Assembly: GCA_002269645.1 (NCBI GenBank)
Contig: NIVC01003723.1
Location: 16,559 to 80,558 of the forward strand
Direction of reading: 5' to 3'
Length of the DNA: 64,000 nt
DNA from: Macrostomum lignano
Lineage: Eukaryota
Shown: in pieces, positions 10,656 to 58,615 of the stretch
How positions within the stretch are numbered: the stretch's first letter is position 1
How the letters are laid out: the number at the start of each line of letters is the position of its first letter
Made by a program: the position numbers and the translations under genes
Notes under the pieces: generated by a model
Told to the model about the DNA's origin: nothing
Databases searched by the model: none
What the model saw: only the letters and a program-made list of their open reading frames with translations

Positions 10656-13600
10656 TTACTTCTCAACTCCGTTCACTGTCACGACTATGTTTCGAGAACC
10701 TGCGATGGGGCAAATTGGGGTTGATAACGCGAGTGTTGCGAGCAGTATGACACCAAAAAGTAACAGTCAGACTGAAGCTGAAAGTTTCATTAACAATCAA
10801 TCCCAAAACTCAAAGATCCCCAATCCCAAAACTGAAAGATCCCTAATCACAAAACTAAAAGATCCCTAATCCCAAAACTCAAAGATCCCCAATCCCAAAA
10901 CTCAAAGATCCCCAATCCCAAAACTCAAAGATCCCCAATCCCAAAACTCAAAGATCCCTAATCCCAAAACTAAAAGATCCCTAATCCCAAAACTCAAAGA
11001 TCCCCAATCCCAAAACTGAAAGATCCCCAAATCCCAAAACTCAACGATCATGATTCCAAAACAGAAAGATCCCAATGCTAACTTATTGATACCAATCCTA
11101 AAACTCAAAGATCTCCGATTCCAAAAATCAAAGATACCAAAGATCCCAGTGAAAAGCAGATTAGCGAGGCCAGACACAAAGCAGACTCACTTTTATGATT
11201 CCTGTGCTCGCACAACCAAATACCCTGCCAGGTGCCCAGGCACATCTGGCCATTGCTGATGGGTATGGTGAGGCTGCAGCCAAGGATGGCAGCTTTGGCG
11301 TGCGCGGGCATGTCGTCGGGGCCTTCGCACGAGTGCTGATAGCGCTGGTCCTGGAGCGAATGAGTGCATGGGTTGATGACAGGGTCTCTAGATTAATAAC
11401 AGGGTCTCTAGATTGATAACAGGGTCTCTAGATTGATAACAGGGTCTCTAGATTGATAATAGGGCCTCTAGATTGATAACACAGGATCTCTAGATTGATA
11501 ACACAGGATCTCTGGATTGATAACACAGGATCTCTAGATTGATAACACAGGATATCTAGATTGATAACACAGGATCTCTAGATTGATAACACAGGATCTC
11601 TAGATTGATAACACAGGATCTCTAGATTGATAACACAGGATATCTAGATTGATAACACAGGATCTCTAGATTGATAACACATGATCTCTAGATTGATAAT
11701 AGGGCCTCTAGATTGATAACACAGGATCTCTAGATTGATAATAGGGCCTCTAGATTGATAACACAGGATCTCTAGATTGATAATAGGGCCTCTAGATTGA
11801 TAACAGGGTCTCTAGATTGATAACAGGGTCTCTAGATTGATAACAGGGTCTCTAGATTGATAACAGGGTCTCTAGATTGATAACAGGGTCTCTAGATTGA
11901 TAATAGGGCCTCTAGATTGATAACACAGGATCTCTAGATTGCTAACAGGGTCTCCAAATTGATAACACAGGATCTCTAGATTGATAACACAGGATCTCTA
12001 GATTGATAACGGAATCGCTAGATTGCTAACAGGGTCTCCAAATTGATAACACAGGATCTCTAGATTGATAACACAGGATCTCTAGATTGATAACGGAATC
12101 GCTAGATTGCTAACAGGGTCTCCAAATTGATAACACAGGATCTCTAGATTGATAACACAGGATCTCTAGATTGATAACACAGGGTCTCCAAATTGATAAC
12201 ACAGGATCTCTAGATTGATAACACAGGATCTCCAGATTGATAACACAGGATCTCTAGATTGATAACACAGGATCTCTAGATTGATAACACAGGATCTCCA
12301 AATTGATAACACAGGATCTCCAAATTGATAACACAGGATCTCTAGATTGATAACACAGGATCTCTAGATTGATAACACAGGATCTCCAAATTGATAACAC
12401 AGGATCTCCAAATTGATAACACAGGATCTCTAGATTGATAACACAGGATCTCCAAATTGATAACACAGGATCTCCAAATTGATAACACAGGATCTCTAGA
12501 TTGATAACACAAGATCTCTAGATTGATAACACAGGATCTCCAGATTGATAACACAGGATCTCTAGATTGATAACACAGGATCTCTAGATTGATAACACAG
12601 GATCTCCAAATTGATAACACAGGATCTCTAGATTGATAACGGAATCGCTAGATTGCTAACAGGATCTCCAAATTGATAACACAGGATCTCTAGATTGATA
12701 ACACAGGATCTCCAAATTGATAACACAGGATCTCCAAATTGATAACACAGGATCTCTAGATTGATAACACAAGATCTCTAGATTGATAACACAGGATCTC
12801 TAGATTGATAACACAGGATCTCTAGATTGATAACACAGGATCTCTAGATTGATAACACAGGATCTCTAGATTGATAACACAGGATCTCTAGATTGATAAC
12901 GGAATCGCTAGATTGCTAACAGGGTCTCCAAATTGATAACACAGGATCTCTAGATTGATAACACAGGGTCTCCAAATTGATAACACAGGGTCTCCAAATT
13001 GATAACACAGGGTCTCCAAATTGATAACACAGGATCTCTAGATTGATAACACAGGGTCTCCAAATTGATAACACAGGATCTCTAGATTGATAACACAGGG
13101 TCTCCAAATTGATAACACAGGATCTCCAAATTGATAACACAGGATCTCTAGATTGATAACACAGGGTCTCCAAATTGATAACACAGGGTCTCCAGATTGA
13201 TAACACAGGATCTCTAGATTGATAACACAGGGTCTCCAAATTGATAACACAGGGTCTCCAGATTGATAACACAGGGTCTCCAAATTGATAACACAGGGTC
13301 TCCAAATTGATAACACAGGGTCTCCAAATTGATAACACAGGGTCTCCAAATTGATAACACAGGGTCTCCAAATTGATAACACAGGGTCTCCAGATTGATA
13401 ACACAGGATCTCTAGATTGATAACACAGGATCTCCAGATTGATAACACAGGATCTCTAGATTGATAACAGGGTCTCTAGATTGATAACACAGGATCTCTA
13501 GATTGATAACAGGGTCTCCAAATTGATAACACAGGGTCTCCAAATTGATAACACAGGGTCTCCAAATTGATAACACAGGGTCTCCAAATTGATAACAGGG

Positions 13601-16600
13601 TCTCCAAATTGATAACACAGGGTCTCCAAATTGATAACACAGGGTCTCCAAATTGATAACACAGGATCTCTAGATTGATAACACAGGATCTCTAGATTGA
13701 TAACACAGGATCTCCAGATTGATAACACAGGATCTCTAGATTGATAACACAGGATCTCCAGATTGATAACACAGGGTCTCCAAATTGATAACACAGGGTC
13801 TCCAAATTAATAACACAGGATCTCTAGATTGATAACACAGGATCTCCAGATTGATAACACAGGATCTCTAGATTGATAACAGGGTCTCTAGATTGATAAC
13901 ACAGGATCTCTAGATTGATAACAGGGTCTCTAGATTGATAACACAGGGTCTCCAAATTGATAACACAGGATCTCCAAATTGATAACACAGGATCTCCAAA
14001 TTGATAACACAGGATCTCCAAATTGATAACACAGGATCTCCAAATTGATAACACAGGATCTCCAAATTGATAACACAGAATCTCTAGATTGATAACACAG
14101 GATCTCTGGATTGATAACACAGGGTCTCCAAATTGATAACACAGGGTCTCTAGATTGATAACACAGGGTCTCCAAATTGATAACACAGGGTCTCCAAATT
14201 GATAACACAGGGTCTCTAGATTGATAACACAGGGTCTCTAAATTGATAACACAGGATCTCTAGATTGATAACACAGGGTCTCCAAATTGATAACACAGGA
14301 TCTCTAGATTGATAACAGGGTCTCTAGATTGATAACACAGGATCTCTAGATTGATAACACAGGATCTCTAGATTGATAACACAGGATCTCTAGATTGATA
14401 ACGGAATCGCTAGATTGCTAACAGGGTCTCCAAATTGATAACACAGGATCTCTAGATTAATAACACAGGATCTCTAGATTGATAACACAGGATCTCTAGA
14501 TTGATAACGGAATCGCTAGATTGCTAACAGGGTCTCCAAATTGATAACACAGGATCTCCAGATTGATAACACAGGATCTCTAGATTGATAACACAGGATC
14601 TCCAAATTGATAACACAGGATCTCTAGATTGATAACACAGGATCTCTAGATTGATAACACAGGATCTCCAAATTGATAACACAGGATCTCCAAATTGATA
14701 ACACAGGATCTCTAGATTGATAACACAGGATCTCTAGATTGATAACACAGGATCTCTAGATTGATAACACAGGATCTCTAGATTGATAACACAGGATCTC
14801 TAGATTGATAACACAGGATCTCCAAATTGATAACACAGGATCTCTAGATTGATAACACAGGATCTCTAGATTGATAACACAGGATCTCTAGATTGATAAC
14901 ACAGGATCTCTAGATTGATAACACAGGATCTCTAGATTGATAACACAGGATCTCCAAATTGATAACACAGGATCTCCAAATTGATAACACAGGATCTCTA
15001 GATTGATAACACAGGATCTCCAGATTGATAACACAGGATCTCCAGATTGATAACACAGGATCTCTAGATTGATAACACAGGATCTCTAGATTGATAACAC
15101 AGGATCTCCAAATTGATAACACAGGATCTCTAGATTGATAACACAGGGTCTCCAAATTGATAACACAGGATCTCCAAATTGATAACACAGGATCTCCAAA
15201 TTGATAACACAGGATCTCCAAATTGATAACACAGGATCTCTAGATTGCTAACAGGGTCTCCAAATTGATAACACAGGATCTCTAGATTGCTAACAGGGTC
15301 TCCAAATTGATAACACAGGATCTCTAGATTGATAACACAGGATCTCTAGATTGCTAACAGGGTCTCCAAATTGATAACACAGGATCTCTAGATTGATAAC
15401 ACAGGGTCTCCAAATTGATAACACAGGATCTCTAGATTGATAACAGGGTCTCTAGATTGCTAACAGGGTCTCCAAATTAATAACACAGGATCTCTAGATT
15501 GATAACAGGGTCTCCAAATTGATAACACAGGATCTCTAGATTGCTAACAGGGTCTCCAAATTGATAACACAGGATCTCTAGATTGATAACAGGGTCTCTA
15601 GATTGCTAACAGGGTCTCCAAATTGATAACACAGGATCTCTAGATTGATAACACAGGATCTCTAGATTGATAACACAGGATCTCTAGATTGATAGCACAG
15701 GGTCTCTAGATTGCTAACACAGGATCTCTAGATTGATAACACAGGATCTCTAGATTGATAACACAGGATCTCCAGATTGATAACACAGGATCTCTAGATT
15801 GATAACACAGGGTCTCCAAATTGATAACACAGGATCTCTAGATTGATAACACAGGGTCTCTAGATTGATAACACAGGATCTCTAGATTGATAACACAGGA
15901 TCTCCAGATTGATAACACAGGGTCTCTAGATTGATAACACAGGATCTCTAGATTGATAACACAGGATCTCTAGATTGATAACACAGGGTCTCCAAATTGA
16001 TAACACAGGATCTCCAAATTGATAACACAGGATCTCTAGATTGATAACACAGGATCTCTAGATTGATAACACAGGATCTCCAAATTGATAACACAGGATC
16101 TCTAGATTGCTAACACAGGATCTCTAGATTGATAACACAGGATCTCTAGATTGATAACACAGGATCTCTAGATTGATAACACAGGATCTCTAGATTGATA
16201 ACACAGGGTCTCTAGATTGATAACACAGGATCTCTAGATTAATAACACAGGGTCTCCAAATTGATAACACAGGATCTCTAGATTGATAACACAGGATCTC
16301 TAGATTAATAACACAGGATCTCTAGATTGATAACACAGGATCTCTAGATTGATAACACAGGATCTCTAGATTGATAACACAGGGTCTCTAGATTGATAAC
16401 AGGGTCTCCAGAAAGGATTTGAAACAACTAGTTCAGTTGTAAAGAAGGAAGAGTAGAAAGCTTTTTACTTACCTCTGGTACAAGACGATTCAATATCATT
16501 TCCATATCAGTTCTAAAAGTTAGAAAATATAAAAAAATCAGGCACTATCCAACACCACAAACCAAAAGTACACAATATACTCACTTAACGGATGCATCCC

Positions 16601-17052
16601 AGGACTAAAATTGGAATGATGAGAAATGTACTTTAATAAACATTGACGTGTTATAGATTTTCAGTTTTCAGGAACCTCAGGCCACCAGAAGTGCATTTGG
16701 CCCCTATCTTTAAGCGTAAAAAAGATTGATTGACTTACTTCGTTCAAGCACAAACTTGCAGAGGTATGCTGAACTGAAAGTACAGCGTGAAAGTTGATAA
16801 TGACAGGTCATGAAATGCTTGAAATACTTTAGTATATTGAAATAGTTTCAATATTATGAGAACGATCAACTCACGCAACAAGTTGACGGTTCCAATTTTG
16901 ATTTTAGCAATCTCTGGTACAGACTTGATTAGATCCGTGATGTAGTGACAGCCTCGAGATTTGCCTGACACCTTCAGCACCGTCTGGTACCAGACTGTAG
17001 CACCGCTGACTGCGGCGGAGACTTTCGATGAGTTTGACAGAAATAGTGCCGT
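10656..17052 (-). CDS. UPF0047/YjbQ family protein; exons ~17052(or 17005)-16875, 16773-16739, 16604-16585, 16512-16473, 11350-11191, 10699-10656; start unresolved
   Basis: Spliced product ...VWYQTVLKVSGKSRGCHYITD...LQHTSASLCLNESWDASVKTDMEMILNRLVPEDQRYQHSCEGPDDMPAHAKAAILGCSLTIPISNGQMCLGTWQGIWLCEHRNHKSSRNIVVTVNGVEK* has the QHTSASL, H-x-x-EG-x-DDMPAH and LGTWQGI motifs; all junctions are phase-consistent. Confidence 0.9.
10790..11150. repeat. 23-bp repeat (CCCAAAACTCAAAGATCCCCAAT)n in the last YjbQ intron
   Basis: Direct tandem copies, degenerate toward both ends. Confidence 0.85.
11378..16410. repeat. ~5-kb minisatellite, 22-bp unit (TAGATTGATAACACAGGATCTC) with 20-bp and CCAAA variants, filling a YjbQ intron
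   Basis: Roughly 230 copies occupying nearly the whole intron 11351-16472. Confidence 0.97.
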
Positions 17053-17169
17053 CTTGCTTTAGTTGCTTGTATTACTGGTATCTTTAAAACTTGTCGTTCT
17101 TAATTTTTAATATCGCTTTGTTTTAGTTTTTGTATAAAACACAGGGTCTCTGGGGGAAGTGGACTGTCA

Positions 17170-17540
17170 GGAGAGACTGAGAAATGTCAGGAAAGGCTTA
17201 AAGATGCGGGAAAGGCTTAGAAATGTCAGGAAAGGCTTAGAGACATCAGGAGAGGCTTAGAGATGTCAGGAGAGGCTTAGAGATGTCAGAAGAGGCTTAG
17301 AGATGTCAGGAGAGGCTCAGAGATGTCAGGAGAGACTTAGAGATGTCAGGAGAGGCTTAGAGATGTCAGGAGAGACTTAGAGATGTCAGAAATGCTTAGA
17401 GGTGTCAAGACAGGCTGAGAAACGTCAGGACAGACTTAAAAATGTCAGGAAAGGCTGAGAGGTGTCAGGAGAGGCTTATAGATAACAGGAGAGTTCTAGA
17501 GATGTCAAGAAAATCTTACAGATGTCAGGAGAGGCTTGTA
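17170..17540. repeat. 20-bp degenerate repeat (AGATGTCAGGAGAGGCTTAG)n
   Basis: About 18 copies upstream of the first identified YjbQ coding exon. Confidence 0.85.
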
Positions 17541-18369
17541 ATATTACCTAAATAACGCTGTAAACTGTCTTTGCGACAAAAATGATTTAATTCGAAAAAA
17601 ACAGGAAACTCACAATCTCACAATATGACAACATTTATGATGATTTGGCCACACGCGATGAACTGCGCATGGCGGTGCTCCAATAATATACATCAGTAGC
17701 AGTAGCATATATATTTCAACCACATATCAATATTACAAGTAGACAAAGCTTTATTTCAAGCAGTTGAAGCAAAAATAGGGATTATACTTGTACTATTAAT
17801 TTTCTGAAACACTCACGAGGCTCTAAATTAATTTAATATCTTTAATGACCCAAGCGAACTTACCAAACACCGGATACTGTATGTATTACATTCTCTGGAA
17901 GGCATATCGTATAATAATTGTACATTATTAAGATGGACCCTAAACTGCAGCAGACAATGCGTCTCGTGCTGTACATTAAACGCCCAAAACCGAAGAAGGA
18001 AGGTTGCATAACAAATATAACAAAATACACGGCAAAATAATCATGCATAGGGAAAGAGCGGAGAGACAGAGGGACATTTTGAAAGCTGAAAGAAACTCAA
18101 TTAAAATCAAACACTTAAAGCTGGATAAAACAAATATTTGATTTGAAACAACATACTACTCAATATCGATTTTTATCGAGTAGTTAATAGGTATTTTTAT
18201 AGCAAAATATATGCACCGAGTTTTGGCATTGAAGAGTCAACTGAATACGCATCAAGCATCAGGGAGAGGAGAGAGAGAGAAGATGGGGAGGAGAGGAGAG
18301 AGAGGAGAGATGCTCCCGCACACCTCCACCCAGTGGAAGTAGCTACAGTACTGGGTTGCTAGGGGGGGG

Positions 18370-18560
18370 GGCCGTAGCCCAGCGGTAGCGCAGCTGCTCT
18401 GGTGTGCCGCGACCCAGGCTCGATTCCAAGTGCAGCCACATTAATTTGGGGCTGAATTGGAATCTCGGCTTGGCTCGCTCGTGCAATTAACGGCCTTGAG
18501 AGCCAACCCCCCCCCCCCCCAAGGCGCAGTGAAGTGTACATGCCTAACAATAAATAAAGT
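18370..18560 (+). mobile_element. tRNA-derived SINE-like element
   Basis: Pol III A box TAGCCCAGCGG (18375-18385) and B box GGCTCGATTCC (18417-18427) at tRNA-like spacing, followed by a unique body and an AATAAATAAA tail; no clean cloverleaf. Confidence 0.6.
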
Positions 18561-19159
18561 TAGGGCCGCTGTACACTCCTGTGGAGTGTGTGCCTGCGTA
18601 ACGTATCCGCGCGCTTGTATGCCTGCTCAGGGGAGTCGGCGGAATGGGCAGTAATGCCTCTCGCCGGTTGTGTGCCAATGACGCTTAAATTGCGCCAGGG
18701 TGCACACAACCCCCCTGCCTCTAATAAAAAAAACTGGGTTGCTATCACCGATATGTATCGTTAATAAGTTTATACACTCCGGAGTGAAAATTGGACTTTT
18801 TAGACTTGACAACAAAGGCTGGGGGACAATGAAATAATTAAAGATACAACAGAAAGCACGCAAAAAATTAATTTAACCGTAAAAGCCTCAAAGTCATGCA
18901 GCAGAGAAGGCACAGATACTAGAATGTTTAAATATGGTACTAGCGAAAGATGCGTTTATCTACTCCGTTTTCAGTAGCATAACTAGAATTTTTGTGTTTT
19001 TTTAAACTTGGACTTTCTATAACCAGACTCATGCAACTTGGCATACTTCAGCATATACTTCAGCAGTGTTTTCCTATTCAATTGTGTAAACTGAGCAAAA
19101 GTACTTATTCTAGAATCTGTGCAGAAAATCAACAAAGTTAGTAACAATATACATGTAGG

Positions 19160-22100
19160 TCACAGATCTGGTTGACTCGAATCGGTTGGCCGCAGAGCCA
19201 CAACGGTGCCAGCGGCGACTGTAACGCCCCGGTCTCTGAGCATGAACTTGCCTAACTCTCTACTATTAGTATAGACGTCGAGGCATAGCGGCCGGTCCAA
19301 TTGTAGTTCAACTTCGGCGCAGCAATTGCTGAGTATGTAGCGCGGATGCCGGCGCTCCAGCTGACCAGTGGATTTGTTAATCTGGGCTAGTAGGCGGATT
19401 ATCGTGACCGGGACTGACACGGCTTGCTGGTGGAATATTGCTTGGTAGCCCTGGATAGATAATAGTCGGTAAAGTAATTATAAACTATAAATCACCGCTT
19501 TGTAAAAATACGTGATTTGCCAACCTCTCCGGAGGGGGGATTGGAATCTAGTCCACTATACTAAATCTTATCAATTCAGAAATACGTGATTTGCCAACCT
19601 CCCCAGAGGGGGGATTGGAATCTAGTCCACTATACTAAATCTTATCAATGCAGAAATACGTGATTTGCCAACCTCTCCGGAGGGGGGATTGGAATCTAGT
19701 CCACTATACTAAATCTTATCAATTCAGAAATACGTGATTTGCCAACCTCCCCAGAGGGGGGATTGGAATCTAGTCCACTATACTAAATCTTATCAATGCA
19801 GAAATACGTGATTTGCCAACCTCTCCGGAGGGGGGTTGGAATCTAGTCTAATATACTAAAGTTGAGTTTGTTTGTTTGTTTGTTTGCTTGTAACAGAAAA
19901 TCTTGCGAACGGAATGACCGATTTTCTCCGTTTTTGCACCATTAGATGGCAAATTGTCCGGAATCGGTACACGTATTTTTAATAAGCAATCCAAATTAAA
20001 GAGGCCTCTCAATTGTCAGAAAACAGGTTTTTGCCCATCTCGCTAATGTATTTTTTCGGCAGTGAGAGCTTGCAAACGGTTTTGGCCATAGATTATAATG
20101 CTAATAGCTGTAGGCTGCTTGGTTTTTATGTAGCCCACTGCTTCCTTTCCTTCTTTCTTTTCTAAATTTGATGTTATCAAAACGATGAGAGCTAGCCTAG
20201 AGGTGAACAAACTGAACTGCTAAATGCAGCGACGATGGTTCGAATTTTCATAGAGTATAATTTTTTTAATTAAAGCTTTTCAACGTCAGGAAAACTAAAA
20301 GACTTTTTAAAAAGAAGCGTCATGTAAAAATCATAGAAGCGTCATGTAAACAATCATAGAAGCGTCATGTAAACAATCATTGAAGCGTCAATTAAAAATC
20401 ATTGAAGCGTCATTTAAAAATCATAAAAGCGTTATTTAAAAAAATCATAAAAGCGTCATGTAAAAAATCGTAGAAGCGCCATGTAAACAATCATAGAAGC
20501 GTCATGTAAAAAATCATAGAAGCGTCATGTAAAAAATCATAGAAGCGTCATGTAAACAATCATAGAAGCATCATGTAAAAAATCATTGAAGCGTCATTTA
20601 CAAATCATAGAAGCGTCATGTAAACAATCATATAAGCGTCATGTAAACAATCATAGAAGCGTCATGTAAACAATCATAGAAGCGTCATGTAAAAAATCAT
20701 AGAAGCGTCATGTAAAAAATCATAGAAGCGTCATGTAAACAATCATAGAAGCATCATGTAAAAAATCATTGAAGCGTCATTTACAAATCATAGAAGCGTC
20801 ATGTAAACAATCATAGAAGCGTCATGTAAACAATCATAGAAGCGTCACGTAAAAAATCGTAGAAGCGTCATGTAAACAATCATAGAAGCGTCATGTAAAA
20901 AGTCATAGAAGCGTCATGTAAAAAATCATAGTAGCGTCATGTAAAAAATCATAGAAGCGTCATGTAAAAAATCGTAGAAGCGCCATGTAAACAATCATAT
21001 AAGCGTCATGTAAACAATCATAGAAGCGTCATTTAAAAAATTAAGAAGCATCAGGGTACAATAAAAGAAGCGTCATGTCAGACATGAAGGGTGTCATGTA
21101 AAAATTTAATGCAGCTATAATGCTGTGCTGGGGAGAAAAACTGAGACGTAAAGGCTCTCAGAGAATAACTGAGATTACGGGGGGGGGGTTCTGAGATGTC
21201 AAAGCAAAAGTCAGAAGCTACTTCAAAGTTCATGTACTTTACTCAATTTTTTATTGCATTCTTTGTTGGCTCGCCACGGGGGGGCGCTGATAGAAGAAGA
21301 TTCATGTAAAAAATAAAAGTAGCACTATGTATACATAAAAGAAAAGTCTTGTCGAAGTTAAAAGATTCATTTGGGAATTGCTACAATGTCAAAGCTTGGT
21401 GGAAATTGTTATAGTGCTGTGATTCTTAAAGAAGGAATCACTAAAATGTCAAGGCTTAGGGGAGAAGAATTGCTGAGATTTCAAGGCTTTAGGTTGGGTT
21501 AAAGTTAGGTTTAGGTCAGGTGTGGGTTGAGGGTTATATTTTTATCGGGTTTCAAGGTTAACAGAATAACAGGGGATTTTTTAGATTTCAAGGTTTATGG
21601 GGGCCATCGCTGACATGTCAAGGCTTACGGGGGGAATAGCTGAGATGTCAAGGCTCACGGGGGTATAAATGAGATTTCAAGGCTAAAGTCAGAAGCTACA
21701 TGAAGTTTATTGAAAACTTTTTATTACATTATTTGATGCCTCCTCAGGGGAGGGATCGCTGATAAAAAAAGCGTAATGTAAAAAATAAAAGAAGCTTCAT
21801 GTCGAAGTTAAGAGATTCATTTGGGAATCCCTACGATGTCGAGGCTTGCAGGGAATCGCTATAATGCTGTAGTGCTATAATGACTCTTAGAGAGAATTAC
21901 TGAAATTTCAATGCTTTAGGGTTAGGTTAGGGTTAGGGTTAGGGTTAGGGTTAGGGTAGGCTAGGGTTAGGGTTAGAAGGTTGACAGATATTTTTAGATT
22001 TCCAAGGCTTATTGGGGGCATTGCTGAGATGTCAAGGGGGGAAGTTGATATGTTAAAGCTTGTGGGGGGGGGAATTACTGGCATGTCAAGGCTTACAAGG

Positions 22101-25919: not shown

Positions 25920-25989
25920 GATGAGGCTGGCGAGGCTGAGGCTGGAAGCATGGAATAGAGCATAGTCGATGGGGTGGCTCAGAGAGACT

Positions 25990-26790: not shown

Positions 26791-26887
26791 GACTTAATGT
26801 TTTGGATCGCGGGACTTCAAGATTTAGGACTATAAAGGAAAAGTATGTGGCATAACCAGTCGAACAAAAATGCCAGGAAAAGCTCAG

Positions 26888-32878: not shown

Positions 32879-32964
32879 CTTGTCACGTGACAGCAATTTT
32901 AGGAGCAATAAAATTAGTTTAATGGGAGATAATGCACTGCTGGATAAGGAGATTGACTTAGGAA

Positions 32965-33120
32965 CAATTTTTTGAGAACACTATGCCATTCTGAGACTGT
33001 TTTGAGAACAATATTTCATTCTGAGACTGTTTTTGAGAACAATATTTCATTCTGAGACTGTTTTTGAGAACACTATTCTATTCTGAGACTGTTTTTGAGA
33101 ACACTATTCCATTCTGAGAC
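32965..33120. repeat. 31-bp repeat (TTTTGAGAACACTATTCCATTCTGAGACTGT) x ~5
   Basis: Direct tandem copies just upstream of PAK1IP1. Confidence 0.85.
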
Positions 33121-33829
33121 TCAAGTGAATAAATAAACAGTAAAATAATAACAAACGCAGAACACGTTAATGAATGCCAAAACAGCTAGTAACTAAGGGA
33201 TCATTATGCATATTTTGTATTTGTATAAATATTATTGGTAGAATTAATGAAAAAAACTTGATTGCACCTCAATAAGCTACTACAGACTACTAATAATGTC
33301 TCAATATCAATAGAATACCAATAGAATAAGTGTAATATATAATAAACATAAGGCTATAAATTCTAAGCAAAAAAACTCGAATGATTCCAATCGAATGTTT
33401 GGCGTAAAGAATACTAAAAAAGATTGTTTTATGAAAATATATAAAATTGTCGATATATTGTTGAAAAAAAACTTGTCTGCAAAAAATCTAGAGGCACTAC
33501 TTGTAACCTAATGGAGTATATAATGAAGATTGGTAATGCGTACTGATCAAAGAGAACTACAATACCTATTGCACTCAATATCATAAAATTTATTGTAAAC
33601 TGGAGATTCGTTGTTGCATATAAAAAAGGGATTGAAAACGTCTAGCAATGGCTAAAACTGCCAATAAATCACCATAAAATAGATGCGAGCCTATTCAATA
33701 ATAGTATTGATATATATATGTGTATATAGTATGCACTGAATTGCTATGGCTATAAATATTATGTTGGATATACGATGGGCAGCCTTCACCAGACAGATGA
33801 TTTGACAAATTGAATAGACAAACTGGAAT

Positions 33830-33974
33830 AGGAGACAGAGACAGACAGACAGAGACAGAGTCAGACAGACAGAGAGACAGACAGACAGTCAGACAGAGAG
33901 ACAGACAGACAGACAGACAGAGAGACAGACAGACAGACAGACAGACAGTCAGACAGACAGACAGACAGACAGTC

Positions 33975-34005
<31 letters not shown>

Positions 34006-34062
34006 GAGACAGACAGACAGACAGACAGACAGTCAGACAGAGAGACAGACAGACAGACAGAC

Positions 34063-34099
<37 letters not shown>

Positions 34100-34172
34100 G
34101 TCAGACAGACAGACAGTCAGACAGTCAGACAGACAGACAGACAGTCAGACAGTCAGACAGACAGACAGACAA
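33830..34172. repeat. (GACA)n microsatellite
   Basis: About 85 tetramers with GAGA and GTCA interruptions. Confidence 0.95.
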
Positions 34173-34257
34173 TCCAGAGCAGCTAACAGATATAGATAGT
34201 CAAAGCTCCCCATATGTCCATACTACTGTTAGTAGCAGCTGACACGAAGCCCGCAGT

Positions 34258-35894: not shown

Positions 35895-35994
35895 GTTGCT
35901 TTTGGTTTGCTTGAATTGGGGGGAATCGCTGCTGTTAGTGCCGCCAATGCACTGCAATTAGGTTGATTGTAGGACTGTCACTGCCACCCATCAT

Positions 35995-36835
35995 CAGTGT
36001 CACTCGCCTATCAGTCTGACACACTTACTCAGTGTCACTCCTCACTCACTCTGCCACCCCCACTCAGTGTCACTCCTCACTCACTCTGCCACCCCCACTC
36101 AGTGTCACTCCTACTCAGTGTCACTCCCACTCAGTGTCACTCCTCACTCACTCTGCCACCCCACTCAGTGTCACTCCTCACTCACTCTGTCACCCCCACT
36201 CAGTGTCACTCCTCACTCACTCTGCCACCCCCACTCAGTGTCACTCCTCACTCACTCTGTCACTCCTACTCAGTGTCACTCCTCACTCACTCTGCCACCC
36301 CCACTCAGTGTCACTCCTCACTCACTCTGTCACCCCCACTCAGTGTCACTCCTCACTCACTCTGCCACCCCACTCAGTGTCACTCCTCACTCACTCTGCC
36401 ACCCCTACTCAGTGTCACTCCTCACTCAGTCTGCCCCCCCCACTCAGTGTCACTCCTCACTCACTCTGCCACCCCACTCAGTGTCACTCCTCACTCACTC
36501 TGCCCCCCCACTCAGTGTCACTCCTCACTCACTCTGCCACCCCTATTCAGTGTCACTCCTCACTCACTCTGCCCCCCCCACTCAGTGTCACTCCTCACTC
36601 ACTCTGCCACCCCTATTCAGTGTCACTCCTCACTCACTCTGTCACTCCTACTCAGTGTCACTCCTCACTCACTCTGTCACTCCCACTCAGTGTCACTTCT
36701 CACTTACCCTGTCACTCCCACTCAGTGTCACTCCTCACTTGCCCTGTCACTCCTCACTCACTCTGTCACTCCTCACTTGCCCTGTAACTCCCACTCAGTG
36801 TCACTCCTCATTCACTCTGGTCACCCCTCACACAC
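35995..36835. repeat. ~35-bp minisatellite (CCCCACTCAGTGTCACTCCTCACTCACTCTGCCAC)n upstream of QDPR
   Basis: About 25 copies. Confidence 0.93.
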
Positions 36836-37544
36836 TCACTCTGTCCGGTAAAAACTAGAAGAAATGATAAAAGTCAACGCATTCGACACGATTAAAATAG
36901 ATAATGCAATTAGCCATATATATATATAATAATTAATGTATTACCTGCAGATGAGTGGTCACAAATCAGACAATAAAAAATCTATATTACGCGCATTTCA
37001 GATTCATATCTACTATAGTGGACAACAGCTAACACGAAGGCGCATTGTTTAAATGTTAGCGCTAGAAGTTACTATTAAAACGAAAGTTGAAATCAGTAAA
37101 AATGATTGGAATTATAATTTTTAAACGAAATAAACGGTACAATTGTTCAGCATGGCCATCTAGCAGACACAGCAGCACTAGCGAAATTTATTTTAATAAT
37201 AATTATGCCTAAGTCGGGAACAAACCAATACAACTTCAAGGCGGACAACAGACAGAATAAAATATTCCAGAACTATAATGAGATAGTACTAAGGTGTCGG
37301 TTCATACTACTGGCACACTGGTGCAAAGTTACGCGCATATAATTATAATTTAAACAATCATAATTGCAATTAAAAATTAAATTGAAATTCTACACTAAAA
37401 TGGACAACCGGACAAATTGGATAGACCTGGCGAAAGGACACCTTTCTATGCACACGAAATCCTAGTGTAACCTCATCGCAACTGAAAGCACATTATAACA
37501 GGAATGGTGCACATTTATTAAAGCGCGCGGGGCCAGTGTACATT

Positions 37545-37810
37545 CGAGTGAGAGATTGGGGTGAGAGAGTCGCGTAGGGCTAGTCGGGAATAATGTACAT
37601 CGGAGTGAGAGAGTGGGTGGGGGCTAGTCGGGATCAATGTACATTAGGGTGGGAGAGTGGGGCTGGTCGGGATCAATGTACATTGGGGTAAGAGAGTGGG
37701 GGCTGGTCGGGATCAATGTACATTGGGGTAAGAGAGTGGGGGCTGGTCGGGATCAATGTGCATTTGGGTAAGAGTGGGAGCTAGTAATGAGTAATGTACA
37801 TTGGGGTGAA
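37545..37810. repeat. ~40-bp repeat (GTACATTGGGGTAAGAGAGTGGGGGCTGGTCGGGATCAAT)n
   Basis: About 6 imperfect copies. Confidence 0.8.
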
Positions 37811-39123
37811 CAATGAAAAATAGTCTGGGGACTAGTCGGTAACAAAGTACATTAGCTGTACACTGGGAGAAATTAGAGTAAATTTGGTTTTTCGATGATT
37901 ATTCATCACACGTGTTCACATAATGATGGATAACAGAAGAATCTAAATAGTATTGCACGCTTGAAATATTTTTATAACTTGTGACACACACTCGCATACA
38001 ATAGGGGCATATTTTCGTACACATAGATAAGTTCCTATACCTGTTTATAAAATATTGAAGTATGTAACGATAAAAAAGAAATCAAAAGGAAGGTAATTAT
38101 GGAAGTTAAAAAACATCTATAGGTGAGATGATCGGATCATCTTTGTTTAAATTGTTTCAAGTTAATTTTGTTTGTTCGATTTAGTTGTAAATCTATAAAT
38201 ATACTAAATTTCATGCTATAAATTATTACCAGTAGACACATAATGATTTTTGTAACCAAGGTAATTACTACTTGACTACCAATCACAGAAGCCGTTACAT
38301 CAGTGAGTGATTCTTCACAACACATAAATGACCGGACAAAAACACACCTTCTCTTCCTTGCTTGAGTCCGTCAACTCAGGGAGAATAAAAGCGCCAAAAA
38401 ATGACTAATTACAAGGATCTTAAAATACAAGCAAAGTTTTTTAAATCAAATACTTTGACGTTTAATATTGGTCGGTCGGTCAGGTCAGCTTAGACACAAA
38501 TCTATGGAATGAAGGAGAACAATCTGTAAGAACGATAGTGTAAGTTCACTCGACTGAAGCTACATGCATGCGCGTGAGTGCACCTGATAGTTAAAAAGCG
38601 GCTTTCCCGACTACTCCATCAATCAATTTCAAGCAAAAAGGACACCTTTGACATTCAAAATATAACTGACAATATAGAAATTTATAATATTAATAATAAT
38701 AAAATATTCGACGATCTGTGGACACTCGCGTCCCTTGATGAATCAGAGTCGCATCTCTAGCAAAAGTTCAGCGCCAACACAACGATTCTTGGACGACTCT
38801 TTCGCGACTCTGTAACCATTCTGCACCTCACATGACGCATTTGTGATGCAAGTCGCCTCTCCGTCACATTGGATTCTTGTATTCTTGTAAAGGTATCGTT
38901 TTTAACGGGTGTGCCCTGGAGGTTAGTCAGACGCGTTTACCAACTGAGCTGCTCTGCCAATGCACTCGTGGCATTATCCATTCAATCAACAGTAGCATCC
39001 AACGACATAGGCGCTAACAAAAAAAAGCAAAATAAAAAACATAAATCAAGCCTACAACAATTAATCAGTAGGTGAATTTCACAAGAAATTAAAAACAAAC
39101 AAGCATTGGCTGACAAAATGGAA

Positions 39124-42100
39124 TTAAAGCTTGTAGAATGTCTCCTCAACGTCATTGGCGGAGACTAATTGCTTTGATCGAACCACCAGTTCGGGATTTG
39201 CCAGAGCATCAGCCGGTGAGCAGTCGGCTAAGCCGGGATCAGCCACAGTTGTCAGGGTAGGAGCGCCAGAGCCGTGCTGGCGCCTGGCCTGCTGGCTGTG
39301 CAGGTAGCGAGCCGTACGCCTGGCAGGCATGCAGCTGTAGGCAGCCTGGGTGTCTTCCTCTGATAGGCTGCGGCGTGGGGTGGGGACTCTTGCGTGAGGC
39401 TCAAGCTACTCTAACTGAGGATCTGAGAGGCTGGCCCAGCGACTGAGGATCTCGGAAGCAACTGAGGATCTGGGAGGGTCACCAAGCAACTGAGGATCTG
39501 GAGGGTCGCCAAGCAACTGAGGATCTGGGAGGGTTGCCAAGCAACTGAGGATCTGGAGGGTTGCCAAGCAACTGAGGATCTGGGAGGGTTGCCAAGCAAC
39601 TGAGGATCTGGGAGGGTCGCCAAGCAACTGAGGATCTGGAGGGTTGCCAAGCAACTGAGGATCTGGGAGGGTTGCCAAGCAACTGAGGATCTGGAGGGTT
39701 GCCAAGCAACTGAGGATCTGGAGGGTTGCCAAGCAACTGAGGATCTGGAGGGTTGCCAAGCAACTGAGGATCTGGAGGGTTGCCAAGCAACTGAGGATCT
39801 GGAGGGTTGCCAAGCAACTGAGGATCTGGAGGGTCGCCAAGCAACTGAGGATCTGGGAGGGTTGCCAAGCAACTGAGGATCTGGAGGGTTGCCAAGCAAC
39901 TGAGGATCTGGAGGGTTGCCAAGCAACTGAGGATCTGGAGGGTTGCCAAGCAACTGAGGATCTGGGAGGCTGGCCCAGCAACTGAGGATCTGGAGGGTTG
40001 CCAAGCAACTGAGGATCTGGGAGGCTGGCCCAGCAACTGAGGATCTGGGAGGCTGGCCAAGCAACTGAGGACCCCATCAAAGCTCTCATTAGTTTAACAT
40101 TAGATAAAACAAGAAATCAATGTTGAAAGTAAAACCGACCAGCCCTACCTGCTCTCATTCTCCAATTTTTCAACGTTAGTCTTTAACTGCATAAATTTGA
40201 GATCAAATTTTCTCAAAAATTCGTTAGAATCCATCTCGCTAAAATCTCTGTCGCTAGCAAAAGTTTTCGACCTGGTGACGGATGAAGAAGAAGCCGATTT
40301 CATCGAGTGGTTTGGCTTAGCCGAACTGTTAGCAGCCGCAGCAGGCTGAGCAGGTGCCTCATCATCGGCCACAAACTGCTCAAAGCTGACTTCCGCCTCA
40401 ACCACAGTCGAGGGCGGAGTCGGGTTCCTAGAGGAAGTGCCCGAGGCGGAACCGCTGCGACTGCCAGCTGCCGGCCCAGAAAGCTCGGGCACTTTGATGC
40501 TGGACTTCAACTGTAGACCATCGTTGCTCCACAAGCCGTTGAGTCTTTTCAGCTCTTCCACCTGAGTGGAAAATTAAGGTCATTGAGTTAGGCAGGCAAC
40601 TAACAGCCAGAAAGGAGACAAATTAGGAAGTAAAATTCAGGGGCTGGCCATAGAGGCACACAGATATGCAAGAAAGTATAGATGTAATTGCGATTAATGT
40701 TCTGTACCAAAGGTCGACAAACGTTTTTATAAGGGCCAGATAAAGAATATACTTCATGGTCGCTGGTCAGATGAGAGTGGAAAGGAGAGAGAATGGATGA
40801 GAAATGAGAGAGAGAAGAGAGGGGGAGAGGTGAACCTTTGTGTAGGCCAGAGTTTCAAGTAGGCCAGATTACTATTGTGAAGTTTTAAAAGACCCAAGGG
40901 CCAAATAAAGAGGGGTTTTGTAGGCCTGGCCACATATAGCCTGCAGGCCAGACTTTGCCAACCCTTGTTCTATACAAATCATTTTGAATGTTAAGCTATT
41001 TAACATTGATAATGTATAAACAGAAAGGATATTTCCATTGCTAAAACTAAATACAAAAGTATAAAAATATAACTATAATTTAAACTTCTTACAATTTGAA
41101 ACTTAAAGTTTTATGAACCATATCTTATTAATGTTTTATATATTATAATAATAATGCCTCAACTTTAACTTTTGTTTGGCATTATAAATTTGGATCCCAG
41201 ATGCGAATTCTAGCTAGATACTTTTTATTTCAATATACAATATCCATATTTTTAATTCATATATTATCCAAAGTAATAAACTTTAAAAAATTGGGATTGC
41301 AAGAATTCTATCAGCTATCAAATTTGAAGCACCTATCTATATAAGCCTAGAGCCTATATAAGCCTTAGTGCATTAAAAATATTGAATATATGTTCTAAAA
41401 TTACTCATTTTATTTTATGTTTCCTAGAAAGCATTATTTCAAATCTGCACTAAAAAATTATTTGTTTAAATGCTATGAACCACAAAAATATTTTTGTGAC
41501 CAATCTTAGTTATAAACAGTAAAGAATTTTTGTATAAATAGAAGCCTAGAACAGGCCAAAAAATAATTATCTACAAGCTAGCAAATTCACTTAGCAAACT
41601 AATATAATTGTTCCATATTAAAATTGCTAATTGCAGTATTCAAGAGACTTATTCATTTCTTTAGAGTATCAAGTCCTATATTGGGAGTTTTGAAAACAAT
41701 TGAAAGCAAGTATCGCCTAAGAGCAATAATTACTATAGAGTAGCAAAATTGCCTTACCTTTAAGGCAGGAGAAACTGCCTCAGGGCAGTGAAATTGCTTA
41801 GAAGCTGTAACCCTTTGATCCTGGGAATATCCAAGGCTGAGAGAAAACTACTGTAGGAGCCATACATGCCTAACACCCATCCAAACCAGATGGGTAAAAT
41901 GGCCACTGGCCAAGGTAAGTTGTAAAATCAAAAATGTGAAAAATGAAAAATTTGGAGAAGAAAGGAGAAAAGGAAAAGGAAAAAGGAAGAAGAGAGAAAA
42001 GGAAAGAGGAGAGAGAAAAAGAAAGAAGAAAAGAGAAAAAGGCAAGAAAAGTCATATAAAAAATAAAAATTAGGTTGTAATTGGGAGAAACTAAGTTGCA

Positions 42101-45100
42101 AATCTAGACAAAACTAAGTCACACCAGACAGGTGAAATAGGTCCTAGTCATTTTGTCAACTGGCGTTTTGTCAACTGGCCATTTTGTCAACTTGGTTTTA
42201 TCACTGGTCGTTTCGTCAACTAGCCAATGAAGCAATTTCAAACCTCAGTCACTTTATCAACTGGCCAACAAGAAGTGTTCCAACATTGTTCACTTCGTCA
42301 ACTGCCAATAAACTATCCCCCGCAGCCACAAAAAGGTAAAACTGAACCCTGAAATGACTAAGTCAACAGGCTAATTAATATTCATACCCTTCTGCAACAT
42401 CTGCCAGCTTTCGATCAATGCGTCTCTGTTATATGCTTGTACATGTACTAACAAAATATAATGCCCTCATGTGTTTGAAACGTGTGCAGCACAACGGGGT
42501 TGACATCCCGTGTTACACATTTGTATATATTAAATTTTGAATGCAGAAGTAATAAAGAAGTAGTACATGTAGTTGAGGAGTAACTGGACCAAAGATAATG
42601 CTGAAAGTAGCCGGGTCCTCTATTCGCAAAACATACATATAGAAAGCATTCCAAATCAAGCCATTACATACATGAATGTGTTCATGTATGAGGGAAGAGG
42701 GAGAAAATGTGTTCATGTATGACTGTGCAGCAGGTCACTTGGACAGAACAGGTTGGCGTGGTGATATAAAAGCTGCATTGGTCACTCCTGTAGGCGATCT
42801 TAACTTGAAGGTGGCGTGCAGCAGGCCAGCATGCACTGCATCAACTTGTTGCTCAAGCAACTTCATCAGCATCCAGGTCTTGACAGTGTATAGCAAGATG
42901 GTCTCAATCACCGCCTTGCCTGGAACAATGCTGTCCTCTAGCGGTCAGCTATACATTAAGCTGGCCTCGGAACGCAGGACTCCCCTAGACTACATGTAAA
43001 TATATTGTAATTCAAGCCAGTAGTGTCGGAACATATTTCAGAGTAGGTGGGGGCTCTTGATGGGAGGGCACATTGCATATAATTTCTTCTAATCTAAGGG
43101 CACCCAAACTTCTGCTGTTATATGAGTTTGTAGCAATATGACATAACAAGGCCAATATTCAATTCTGTGTTGGGGTAGCCAAAAGTCTAGCTGAAAATGC
43201 TTAAATTTTCAACTAATTCAAACATTGTGCAACTGTACTGCACTCATTTCAAGGACTGCACTTAAGTGACTTCAGTGGTCCTTGACTAATTTATTTAGTA
43301 TATAGTCATAGATTTCTCAAATGAATGAAAATTGCAAGGGCAAGACCAGTAATTTTCTGGATCTCTTGGCGCTGTCTCTATTCTTTTAGCTTTTATATCT
43401 TTCCTCTCATCTTCCTTTTTTTCTCCATTTTCTTTTCCCTTCCTTTCTCTCTTGATCCTCTCCTTTCCTCTCTCTTCTATTTTGTCTCTCCTCTCCTCTT
43501 GATCTATCCTCTCCTATTTCATCTCTCCTCTCAATTGTATACTCTCTTATCCTTATTCCTTCGCCTCTCCTTTCTTCTACAAATATGCCAGCTTGTATTT
43601 TTCTTCTCCATTCCCTATCCTCTCTCCCTCCTTTGGCTTGCAATCATCAGGGACTCCTGGGTGCATTTTGCTTAGGGGCCTAGCGAAGCAGACCTAGAAG
43701 GGCAGTCATTGCGCTAGGTTTTCAATCTGGCCCTTAAGGTAAAAAGTTTGTTGATCCTACATGTAAAACCACTAGGCTTAGGCATATGGCCAAGTCTTAT
43801 GCAGCTACATGAGCAGGAATGCACGAATCAAAAGCACACCACTGTGGTATTGCACCCAATATCGCCAATCGGTTTGCCCATCTGCCTATGCCTTTGCATC
43901 TGTCTACTTGTGTCTGCTTGTGCCTTCTTACAGTGCACTATACATTTTAGTGTTAAGCATGACAAGGAGTGAAATACCTTATACGTGTACGGCATGATCG
44001 ATTGATGAGCGTGTGTGAATTGTACAAATTATATACTCTGATTAAAAGCATTATTGGATATCAAGATTCACTGTAGGGGCTTTGGCTGACTATGCACAAC
44101 GGGGTGGAAGGGTGGGAAGGTGCACGTAGTCTACTAATTTTTGCGACTCCATATATAGAGGACTTCATAGCAGTCTTCGATGCGTTTTGATAGGAGAAAT
44201 ACCCATGTTTTGTAGTCGCATGTATGGTTGCATAACACAAATACTCAAGATTCATTAATGCTTGGATGTATATGGGTATGAGTGCGCATAGGGTGACGCA
44301 TTTGCATAGAATATTTGCATCAAAACATTTTACCTAATGGACATGCAGTCTGGTATTGCAAAATTGTAAAATTTGTTTGTTTTTTTAAATAAGGCAATTA
44401 ATAAAACAAGTCATCGATATAACAATAATTGTAAGCTATACAAGATATGCAGCTAAATCAGCTACATATATATATCATTCAAATAATCAAAATCTTAGTT
44501 ACTTTATCAATAAGCAAATGGGAAAGACCTAGGCATTAGTCACTTCATCAATATACATGCGCAACTGCTGGCCAACCTGGCCAATCTGGCCACCGTAAAT
44601 TGTGGTGGACCAGAGGTAAGTCGCAAAAATGCTACCCCAAAAAATATGGACATAGTACTAATTAGATTCCAAGGCATTTAGGCCTGATAAGACAGTTATA
44701 GTTACTCCTGCCATTTACTTGTTAATTTTGCTTTAGGTTTTCTTCACAGGTAAGTTGCATTTTTGGTCAAAAAGTAAGTCGCATGGCCAGTGTAAATCAG
44801 GGGGGTTGCGCATGTATGCTTCATCAACTACCAGTAAAGTTGCCCCAATACTTTGGTCACTTTGTCAACTGAGTTGACAAAATGCCAGTTGATGAAATGA
44901 CCATCACCTAGTGAAATTACACATTAACCAATAAAAATATATAAACAAAGTACATTTATATGCTACCAATAAAAGTTAAGTAACAGCAATAAGATCATCT
45001 CAGAGGGAAGAAGAAGCCCTTAGCCCTGTAACATCTTAACGGTATCAGTGTGATCATTAGGCCTAAAGACAAAAGTTTAGCCCTTTGAGTTTGACAATTA

Positions 45101-45423
45101 TTTAAAATAGATTAGTAAGTATTTATTATATAACTTACAAAAAATGCTCATGCCTAGGTTTCAAGTTCTTACTCTTAGGCCCTTAAGCATATTCCATATA
45201 ATGCTGGCAAGCACTAAAAAAAGCAACAAAAAGAACTTACTGTTGTTTCATATTTAATTGCTAAAGACACAAGAGTGTCACTAGGTCTAACTTTGTGGAG
45301 TCTTGTCTTCTGAGATGTTGTTGAAGCACTTTTTGATGTTGCACCATATGTTCGAATTTTCTTAACTGTATTTTTTGGGACAGTTGATCCAGAAGTAAAC
45401 AATATATCTTTTTCATCAGCCAT
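39124..45423 (-). CDS. LysM domain-containing protein (LYSMD1/2-like); exons 45423-45241, 40561-40149, 39367-39124
   Basis: RTYGAT...HKVRPSDTLVSLAIKYETT|VEELKRLNGLWSNDGLQLKSSIKVP is a LysM domain split by an intron; later FLRKFDLK and the C-terminus EETFYKL* resemble LYSMD1/2. The last acceptor was inferred from phase. Confidence 0.85.
39410..40072. repeat. 27-28-bp minisatellite (GCCAAGCAACTGAGGATCTGGAGGGTT)n in LysM-gene intron 2, same family as 24870-25180
   Basis: About 24 copies; the end copies match the HBS1L-intron unit. Confidence 0.93.
40708..40967. mobile_element. hAT-type MITE (~260 bp)
   Basis: Imperfect TIRs CAAAGGTCGACAAAC / CTTTGCCAACCCTTG; 8-bp flanks TTCTGTAC (40700-40707) and TTCTATAC (40968-40975) match 7/8. 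Confidence 0.7.
42140..44908. mobile_element. Putative TIR element with TA flanks (~2.77 kb) containing nested debris
   Basis: Left GGTCCTAGTCATTTTGTCAACTGGCGTTTTGTCAAC versus right GTTGACAAAATGCCAGTTGATGAAATGACCATCACC; TA at 42138-42139 and 44909-44910. Confidence 0.5.
42730..42950 (-). pseudogene. Non-LTR retrotransposon (RTE-like) post-RT fragment
   Basis: Minus-strand KAVIETILLYTVKTWMLMKLLEQQVDAVHAGLL...VTNA resembles the conserved LINE segment after RT. Confidence 0.55.
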
Positions 45424-58606: not shown

Positions 58607-58615
58607 TTTTAACGC

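Follow-up and report, generated by a model that had tools for sequence, protein, structure and literature searches.

In the SL2-type operons of Caenorhabditis elegans (SL, spliced leader), genes are transcribed as a polycistronic precursor, the upstream message has its 3' end formed in coupling with trans-splicing of the downstream one, and the intergenic distances have a mode of about 100 bp. In Macrostomum lignano, a free-living flatworm, 30% of the genes are trans-spliced and about 15% are in operons of up to nine genes (PMC8629364). The operons of this species contain 2–9 genes, 75% of them two and 18% three (Ustyantsev and Berezikov, 2021, PMC8629364; Wudarski et al., 2017, PMC5730564). 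Their spacers are inflated by repeats, the repeat-subtracted distance between trans-spliced neighbours peaks at about 100 bp, 1 kb was taken as the threshold for an operon, and the transcriptional units (TUs) assembled from RNA sequencing (RNA-seq) reads are prone to break up within spacers rich in repeats (PMC8629364). The M. lignano SL, CGGTCTCTTACTGCGAAGACTCAATTTATTGCATG, is 35 nt long and ends in ATG, and its acceptor is an AG directly before the mature 5' end, which is often (44% of sites) part of a [T/C]TNCAG motif (PMC8629364). For the parasitic Neodermata, operon candidates are genes on the same strand that are either separated by ≤300 bp or fused in a chimeric gene model (Calvelo et al., 2025, PMC12582326); the median intercistronic distance in Schistosoma mansoni is 99 bp and most Neodermatan operons consist of two genes (PMC12582326). 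Use of the SL AUG as initiator is established in flatworms, and as far as the work of Cheng et al. (2006, J Biol Chem 281:733) is cited in PMC9851317, this AUG is in frame in 28% of the trans-spliced mRNAs of S. mansoni and is required by >40 cDNAs; it has been noted for Macrostomum too (PMC10468722). In the present work we have analysed a stretch of 64,000 nucleotides (hereafter, the window) from contig NIVC01003723.1 of the M. lignano assembly GCA_002269645.1 (Mlig_3_7), where genes for a LysM-domain protein, dihydropteridine reductase (QDPR), a PAK1IP1-like WD40 protein, HBS1L and YjbQ follow one another on the minus strand (Table 1). We favour, with moderate confidence, the reading that these five conserved housekeeping genes constitute an SL operon, or else two to three sub-operons in a chain, in which PAK1IP1 and YjbQ appear to take their start codon from the SL.

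An earlier sequence-only reading of this DNA had described the order and common orientation of these genes and had invoked the trans-splicing of flatworms; both the arrangement and the flatworm origin are confirmed. The window is eukaryotic, has about 42% G+C and is packed with minisatellites. Its minus-strand open reading frames (ORFs) contain the Pfam domains LysM, adh_short (QDPR), WD40, GTP_EFTU together with its C-terminal domains, and UPF0047/YjbQ. Spliced models were assembled from ORFs and GT..AG sites; those for LysM (279 aa), PAK1IP1 (396 aa), and HBS1L (626 aa) correspond letter for letter to GenBank proteins of M. lignano. The YjbQ product is 99–100% identical to M. lignano GenBank proteins, its cluster consisting of three members on three contigs of GCA_002269645.1, and the gene span of PAA50072.1 on NIVC01003723.1 (80,558 nt) matches the window exactly. 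Two sister loci, copy B (NIVC01000013.1) and copy C (NIVC01001546.1), carry these five genes in unchanged order with 95–100% identity, and the three genomic copies are in line with the karyotype duplication known for DV1, the line that was sequenced (PMC8629364). Because these copies are recent duplicates, their conservation says nothing on function. With regard to the adjacency and co-orientation used to recognise operons (Ustyantsev and Berezikov, 2021), no other gene is called between the five in any of the three copies; co-orientation of five genes has by itself a probability of 1/16. The stop-to-start gaps of 3.2, 1.4, 1.0, and 2.1 kb given by the sequence-only reading were reproduced upon remeasurement.

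Good support for SL trans-splicing was obtained for PAK1IP1. The acceptor proposed earlier for this gene, GACAAG at 32879, is present, and the exon following it has no in-frame ATG between the upstream stop (32983) and the conserved N-terminus. An SL joined at GACAAG/TCC (the slash marks the predicted junction) would bring its AUG in frame, giving M-SAPVLVVG... PAA50074.1 (Mlig006864g4, partial) has exactly the sequence of the 396-aa product, and the annotated 5'-partial coding sequence (CDS) in the window begins at 32878, which is the first base after this AAG. An alignment of the WD40 protein with human PAK1IP1, a check of lead quality, extends over both from end to end (E = 4e-40), and in it residue 5 of the M. 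lignano protein (residue 1 being the Ser after the SL Met) pairs with human residue 3. As the N-terminus meets the very start of the human protein, an upstream coding exon is not needed. Searches against the PDB did not confirm the identity of this protein, the N-terminal half yielding only generic WD40 matches and the C-terminal half none, and a homology search with exon 1 also produced no match.

For YjbQ, the last gene of the cluster, the support for SL trans-splicing is reasonable. No in-frame ATG is present between the upstream stop (17061) and the conserved N-terminus, and an SL AUG at GCAAG/ACG (17053) would read M-TALFLSNSSKVSAAVSGATVWYQ, which is the sole in-frame solution 5' of the conserved WYQ. 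Of the two acceptors previously suggested for this gene, AAGCAAG is retained on this basis. The other, CCGCAG (17010), was rejected as the site supplying the start, as the SL AUG would there read MSAVLQSGTRRC and then a stop, a dead end of 12 codons. YjbQ orthologues begin 6–8 residues before WFQ/WYQ, and from the SL start the M. lignano protein would gain about 20 residues. The spliced model (150 aa) is identical to PAA50072.1 (Mlig031874g2, partial), annotated from 17028, and its intron 4 holds a 5-kb minisatellite with a 22-nt unit. Both properties that characterise SL-AUG-initiated flatworm mRNAs, namely the lack of a genomic in-frame AUG and an SL AUG that is in frame, are found at the AAG sites of PAK1IP1 and YjbQ.

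This missing in-frame ATG in PAK1IP1 and YjbQ, to which the sequence-only reading had not drawn attention, is the feature of the locus that is above chance. The acceptor-like sites that it had listed before each start were all found, at or within 1–2 bases of the coordinates given; as motifs, however, they are no commoner than expected by chance and were dropped as evidence in themselves. On the minus strand, the probability of at least one YAG per 60 nt is P = 0.89 and that of at least one YTNCAG match is P = 0.14, and the latter motif is matched at only two of the five genes (QDPR, TTGCAG; HBS1L, CTTCCAG). AAG acceptors, though unusual, are also used at 2 of the 13 cis introns of the five genes. 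Rfam and tRNA scans of the window detected neither an SL RNA gene nor any other RNA gene; the SL 3' half has no copy in the window at ≤3 mismatches, and weaker SL-tail matches there are not enriched (38 observed versus 30 expected).

QDPR and HBS1L possess ATGs of their own, at 35894 and 25919, respectively. The support for their trans-splicing is suggestive, based upon their 5'-partial annotation and upon the SL-like ATG variants that sister copies show at the junction. Both candidate acceptors of QDPR, TTGCAG (35952) and TTCAAG (35910), would place the SL AUG in frame, and the annotated protein (PAA50075.1, Mlig006864g3, 257 aa, 5'-partial, with CDS from 35942) is our 241-aa model plus 16 upstream codons. 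An exact look-up of the QDPR exon ORF among proteins gave no match, and a homology search only matches of about 55–59%, spread across Metazoa, by which the species was not identified; the search with YjbQ identified it. The 626-aa HBS1L product is identical to PAA50073.1 (Mlig031874g1, partial), the CDS of which begins at 25946, 27 nt before the ATG. In addition to CTTCCAG (25942), a candidate acceptor for this gene is the CCCAG of copy B, which ends 6 nt further upstream, where the window has CCATG (25949); the annotated copy B CDS begins 3 nt after this CCCAG.

At this HBS1L junction, the bases preceding CTTCC are CCATG in the window (25949-25951), CCCAG in copy B and CCCTG in copy C, the changes at the junction accounting for two of only six positions that vary over about 115 aligned columns. 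At the upstream QDPR junction, copy B has AATGCATG versus AATTGCAG in the window (i.e., TGCATG versus TTGCAG), and at the second junction TTCATG is found in copy C versus TTCAAG in the window and copy B. In copy C, a 10-nt deletion removes the upstream acceptor of QDPR and the annotated CDS starts directly after TTCATG. All of these ATG variants change towards the last bases of the SL, ...TGCATG. The assembly was polished by Pilon with RNA-seq as well as genomic reads, and for this reason leader bases could have entered the consensus from SL-bearing reads that were forced across an acceptor. The variants may plausibly be footprints of SL reads left by polishing, which would mark real junctions; the true SL junctions would then be at 35952 and 35910 in QDPR and 6 nt upstream of the previously noted site in HBS1L. 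For users of this assembly the caution follows that RNA-seq polishing may have put spliced-leader bases into acceptor sites. A different origin of the variants would be that they are genuine changes of the germline, copied from SL-bearing mRNA by RNA-templated conversion of the acceptors, in which case sequence would return from trans-spliced messages to the genes that encode them; a more modest possibility is that the hypervariable minisatellites located directly 5' of every downstream acceptor act in the processing of the operon and are not neutral filler. We mention these possibilities as speculations to which hardly any credence should be given.

The 5'-partial annotation of QDPR, PAK1IP1, HBS1L, and YjbQ is found in all three genomic copies, and it implies that the reading frame reaches the very 5' end of the transcript model. 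If the genes were conventional and not trans-spliced, the partial CDSs and missing ATGs would reflect an incomplete assembly, with the start codons being carried by unannotated cis-spliced 5' exons. The chance expectation of acceptor-like strings is compatible with this, as are the annotated 5' ends of QDPR, YjbQ, and copy C HBS1L, which are not preceded by an AG and differ between copies. More specifically, the annotated 5' ends of QDPR (35942) and YjbQ (17028) lie 9 and 24 nt, respectively, downstream of their candidate AGs, the GACAAG of PAK1IP1 and the GCAAG of YjbQ have the AG but not the YTNCAG motif, and an SL AUG at HBS1L would open an out-of-frame ORF of 69–71 codons; all of these observations weigh against the favoured reading. 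Bypass of an out-of-frame SL AUG is common in flatworms. The displaced starts of QDPR and YjbQ are such as truncated assembly ends would give, and they neither prove nor exclude an SL site. We consider the absence of trans-splicing to be very improbable in view of the PAK1IP1 evidence, where the N-terminus aligns with the start of the human protein and the CDS starts exactly after an AG that would place the SL AUG in frame. Moreover, 5'-partial models for four of five genes in each of three copies are unlikely for well-expressed housekeeping genes with ordinary 5' untranslated regions (UTRs), and trans-splicing in M. lignano is most frequent among conserved genes (45%; PMC8629364).

For the LysM gene, there is no support for trans-splicing. 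Its own ATG, at 45423, is in a good context (AAATGG), and the 279-aa spliced product is identical to PAA94190.1 (Mlig019246g1), a complete CDS that is annotated on copy B; in the window the gene is intact yet lacks GenBank annotation on the window's own contig. The TTTAG (45426) that had been proposed as its acceptor is not upheld, as an SL joined there would start a 55-codon out-of-frame ORF and the annotated CDS is complete. A stronger CTTGCAG (45482) is also present in the region 5' of the gene, which is near-identical to copy B over 580 nt, beyond which the copies diverge. Based upon the strong context of its ATG, its complete CDS, the unique 580 nt upstream of it and the lack of any annotated gene within 10 kb upstream in copy B, LysM is probably the first, promoter-proximal gene of the cluster, and these 580 nt are a candidate for its promoter.

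That the genes are transcribed together is suggested by the naming of the TUs, a chimeric gene model from an independent annotation and the repeat-adjusted spacing. The GenBank annotation is derived from genome-guided RNA-seq TUs, which TBONE divided into genes where SL-trimmed reads and poly(A) reads peak; the locus-tag prefix is given per TU and is retained by all genes cut from it. A common prefix is carried by LysM and QDPR in copy C (Mlig033953 g1 and g2), by QDPR and PAK1IP1 in the window (Mlig006864 g3 and g4), by PAK1IP1, HBS1L, and YjbQ in copy B (Mlig010388 g1, g2, and g3), and by HBS1L and YjbQ in both the window (Mlig031874 g1 and g2) and copy C (Mlig033509 g1 and g3). As these neighbouring proteins are unrelated, a common TU prefix indicates that every adjacent pair was bridged by assembled RNA in at least one copy. 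By their prefixes the genes are thus derived, in groups of two or three, from one RNA-seq TU, which is an operon criterion, and no single TU spans all five of them. In addition, an independent older model (UniProt A0A1I8JGJ5, a 1225-aa "dihydropteridine reductase") fuses QDPR, PAK1IP1, and HBS1L, and chimeric gene models of this kind count as operon candidates in parasitic flatworms (PMC12582326). The fusion in A0A1I8JGJ5 reads through minisatellite sequence of the spacers.

The tandem repeats that the sequence-only reading had described for the first three gaps are present in these and in the fourth one as well. Gap length differs between the copies only through the copy number of minisatellites, and the minisatellites of introns vary too. 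The QDPR–PAK1IP1 spacer measures 1379, 4941, and 2545 nt in the window, copy B and copy C, respectively, with non-repeat parts of 891, 888, and 897 nt; the difference is wholly due to the copy number of the 31-nt minisatellite 5' of PAK1IP1 (153, 3412, and 1083 nt, or about 5, 110, and 35 units) and to the (AGAC)n array. For the LysM–QDPR spacer, the non-repeat length is likewise about equal in the three copies. After subtraction of the TRF arrays, the four CDS-to-acceptor gaps of the window are 2072, 891, 402, and 1733 nt, the last being 1350 nt without the SINE-like (short interspersed nuclear element) insertion described below. When the nearest AATAAA is taken as the 3' end, the poly(A) sites thus being inferred from this signal, the repeat-adjusted distances are about 170 nt for PAK1IP1–HBS1L (the non-repeat sequence from the AATAAA at 26489 to the acceptor), 300 nt for HBS1L–YjbQ, 540 nt for QDPR–PAK1IP1 and 390–700 nt for LysM–QDPR. 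The minisatellites end 30–110 nt upstream of the 5' end of each downstream gene.

Several other characteristics of the repeats were noted. In the window copy only, and absent from copies B and C, the HBS1L–YjbQ spacer contains a 383-nt SINE-like insertion (about 18362-18744, with the element on the plus strand) that has a tRNA-like head and an A-rich tail and is flanked by a 12-nt target-site duplication, TAGCAACCCAGT. On the transcribed strand, each unit of the 35-nt minisatellite 5' of QDPR (35981-36827) includes a donor-like GTGAGT and an acceptor-like GGCAG, so that the array forms about 24 tandem pseudo-splice sites within the putative outron or spacer. Minisatellite families with 27/28-nt, 74-nt, and 21-nt units recur at 24862-25177 and 39456-40071, at 19506-19860 and 22198-23402, and at 3435-4488 and 9999-10347, respectively, and some of these arrays yield long spurious ORFs on a strand that depends on the array.

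The same arrangement would be seen if the genes, while co-oriented, were transcribed separately from their own promoters in or beside the spacers, most of them still being SL trans-spliced as monocistronic, outron-bearing transcripts, and if their common TUs arose from read-through transcription or multi-mapped repeat reads. Several observations count in favour of this or against an operon. The raw spacers are 1–3 kb, or 10–30 times the 100-bp mode, and the LysM–QDPR spacer keeps about 2.1 kb of non-tandem sequence. On the window contig, the TUs are split in two (QDPR with PAK1IP1, and HBS1L with YjbQ), ending between PAK1IP1 and HBS1L, and LysM is excluded from them. The TU assembly, carried out with STAR, permitted up to 1000 multi-mappings and, as the same minisatellite families occur at several places in the window, repeat-filled gaps could have been bridged artificially, or alternatively by read-through transcription. 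About 60% of the trans-spliced genes of M. lignano are outside operons (PMC8629364), and ≤2 kb of sequence 5' of transcription start sites has sufficed for correct transgene expression in this species (PMC5730564). Further, transcript-derived copies of the five proteins are absent from the protein collection searched, and in Opisthorchis felineus, the species in which synteny was checked, the YjbQ neighbourhood is not conserved; hence, nothing points to an ancient operon. The supplements of PMC12582326, PMC5816591, PMC5730564, and PMC5173321 contain no entries for these genes or locus tags. We nevertheless hold separate promoters to be possible but rather unlikely, in that TUs bridge every junction in one copy or more, three of the genes are fused in an independent annotation, the minisatellites extend to within 30–110 nt of the downstream 5' ends and leave little unique sequence for a promoter, and the repeat-adjusted distances would, with AATAAA as 3' end, be within the published operon threshold.

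According to the operon reading, transcription would start 5' of LysM and proceed through the whole cluster, with each upstream message being cleaved and polyadenylated. The messages of QDPR, PAK1IP1, HBS1L, and YjbQ would gain the 35-nt SL at an acceptor located a few to about 60 nt before their coding start. For PAK1IP1 and YjbQ, the terminal AUG of the SL would serve as the initiator codon, in QDPR it would be an in-frame upstream AUG, and in HBS1L it would be out of frame and have to be bypassed. The kb-sized spacers would be short intercistronic regions swollen by hypervariable minisatellites and one SINE-like insertion. Of the polycistronic unit or cluster of SL-processed genes envisaged by the sequence-only reading, SL processing has good support for PAK1IP1, reasonable support for YjbQ, suggestive support for QDPR and HBS1L, and none for LysM. 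That the TUs are genuine polycistronic precursors is what we infer, as we do the precise acceptors, the places of poly(A) addition and the use of one promoter only.

Table 1. Positions in the window of the five genes, their spacers and the candidate processing sites (exons in the order of transcription).
Feature	Position	Strand	Exons or content	Remarks
Candidate promoter region of cluster	45424..46000	-	~580 nt unique, AT-rich, repeat-free	Upstream of LysM
LysM-domain gene (LYSMD1/2-like)	39124..45423	-	45423-45241, 40561-40149, 39367-39124	Pfam LysM
LysM–QDPR spacer	35952..39123	-	3172 nt, 1100 nt minisatellite (35981-36827, 35-nt unit; 37555-37807); AATAAA 37519, 37192	LysM 39124 to QDPR ATG 35894, 3.2 kb
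QDPR (dihydropteridine reductase)	34258..35951	-	35951/35894-35421, 34509-34258	Pfam adh_short
QDPR–PAK1IP1 spacer	32879..34257	-	1379 nt; (AGAC)n 33837-34171; 31-nt minisatellite 32969-33121; AATAAA 33594	QDPR 34258 to PAK1IP1 32878, 1.38 kb
PAK1IP1-like WD40 gene	26888..32878	-	32878-32382, 29552-29133, 27161-26888	
PAK1IP1–HBS1L spacer	25943..26887	-	945 nt, 543 nt minisatellite (26587-26776; 26009-26361); single AATAAA 26489	PAK1IP1 26888 to HBS1L ATG 25919, 0.97 kb
HBS1L	19160..25948	-	25948/25941-25290, 24808-24312, 24041-23606, 19450-19160	Pfam GTP_EFTU and C-terminal domains
HBS1L–YjbQ spacer	17054..19159	-	2106 nt; 20-nt minisatellite 17165-17537; AATAAA 17755	HBS1L 19160 to YjbQ ~17052, 2.1 kb
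YjbQ/UPF0047	10656..17052	-	17052-16875, 16773-16739, 16604-16585, 16512-16473, 11350-11191, 10699-10656	
Acceptor end, LysM	45426	-	TTTAG	Not upheld
Acceptor end, QDPR	35952	-	TTGCAG	
Acceptor end, PAK1IP1	32879	-	GACAAG	
Acceptor end, HBS1L	25942	-	CTTCCAG	
Acceptor end, YjbQ	17053	-	GCAAG	
Acceptor end, YjbQ	17010	-	CCGCAG	Rejected as start-supplying site

Outside the cluster, a xanthine dehydrogenase/aldehyde oxidase gene has its C-terminal exons (Pfam MoCoBD_2) at 917-2474 on the plus strand, opposite to that of the cluster; this neighbour is also part of the annotation of the window's contig and of copy B, and a Helitron-like gene is found in its place in copy C. Transposon remnants are seen at three places. 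The one at 52171-53539 (minus strand) is a P-element/THAP9-like transposase fragment with a weak TNP-like RNase H match. The ORFs at 46640-47240 (plus) and 5754-6149 (minus) look like reverse-transcriptase/pol fragments; the parts of them that were scanned (46879-47238 and 5757-6149) have no Pfam match. A series of AT-rich ORFs of 88–169 aa at 56200-59000 (minus) is possibly part of a large mobile element, and a Pfam scan of two of them (56745-57146 and 57527-58033) gave no match.

The locus can serve as a worked example of a large flatworm operon candidate, with spacers that hypervariable minisatellites have inflated up to 13-fold and with two members that would depend on the SL for their start codon. 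For annotation, it suggests that GenBank proteins labelled 5'-partial may be complete once the SL Met is added and, for transgenesis in M. lignano, that promoter function is improbable for the sequence 5' of QDPR, PAK1IP1, HBS1L or YjbQ. General knowledge of trans-splicing is unaltered by it. SL operons whose spacers are expanded by repeats, start codons donated by the SL and TUs that contain several genes have all been published already for M. lignano; this five-gene cluster itself has not been described previously, and its value is that of a good example, not of a discovery.

In comparison with the SL2-type operons of C. elegans, the cluster has in common the proposed polycistronic precursor, and the intergenic mode of about 100 bp is the same in both species; in contrast to C. 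elegans, M. lignano has a single type of SL with no specialised SL2, and the spacers seen here carry kilobases of minisatellite. With the operons of Neodermata (Schistosoma, Echinococcus, Hymenolepis), where the downstream cistrons are trans-spliced, it shares an SL ending in AUG and the fusion of neighbouring genes by gene predictors. It differs from them in its raw spacers of 1–3 kb and in that the YjbQ neighbourhood is not common to O. felineus; all of the raw distances are ≥0.9 kb, exceeding the ≤300 bp used for Neodermatan candidates, and it is by way of a chimeric model, A0A1I8JGJ5, that the cluster would be counted among them. PAK1IP1 and YjbQ resemble the S. mansoni cDNAs that require the SL AUG, as both are without a genomic in-frame ATG and would need that of the SL, although here this is deduced from genome and annotation alone and for a free-living macrostomid rather than a schistosome. 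Unlike most operons of M. lignano, the cluster comprises five genes, which is uncommon, and two of its candidate acceptors are AAG and not YTNCAG. It resembles these operons in its SL ending in AUG, its co-oriented conserved genes, its tandem-repeat spacers and its multi-gene TUs that split in repeats, as well as in a number of genes that is within the known range of 2–9; with AATAAA taken as the 3' ends, it would also resemble them in repeat-adjusted lengths of <1 kb.

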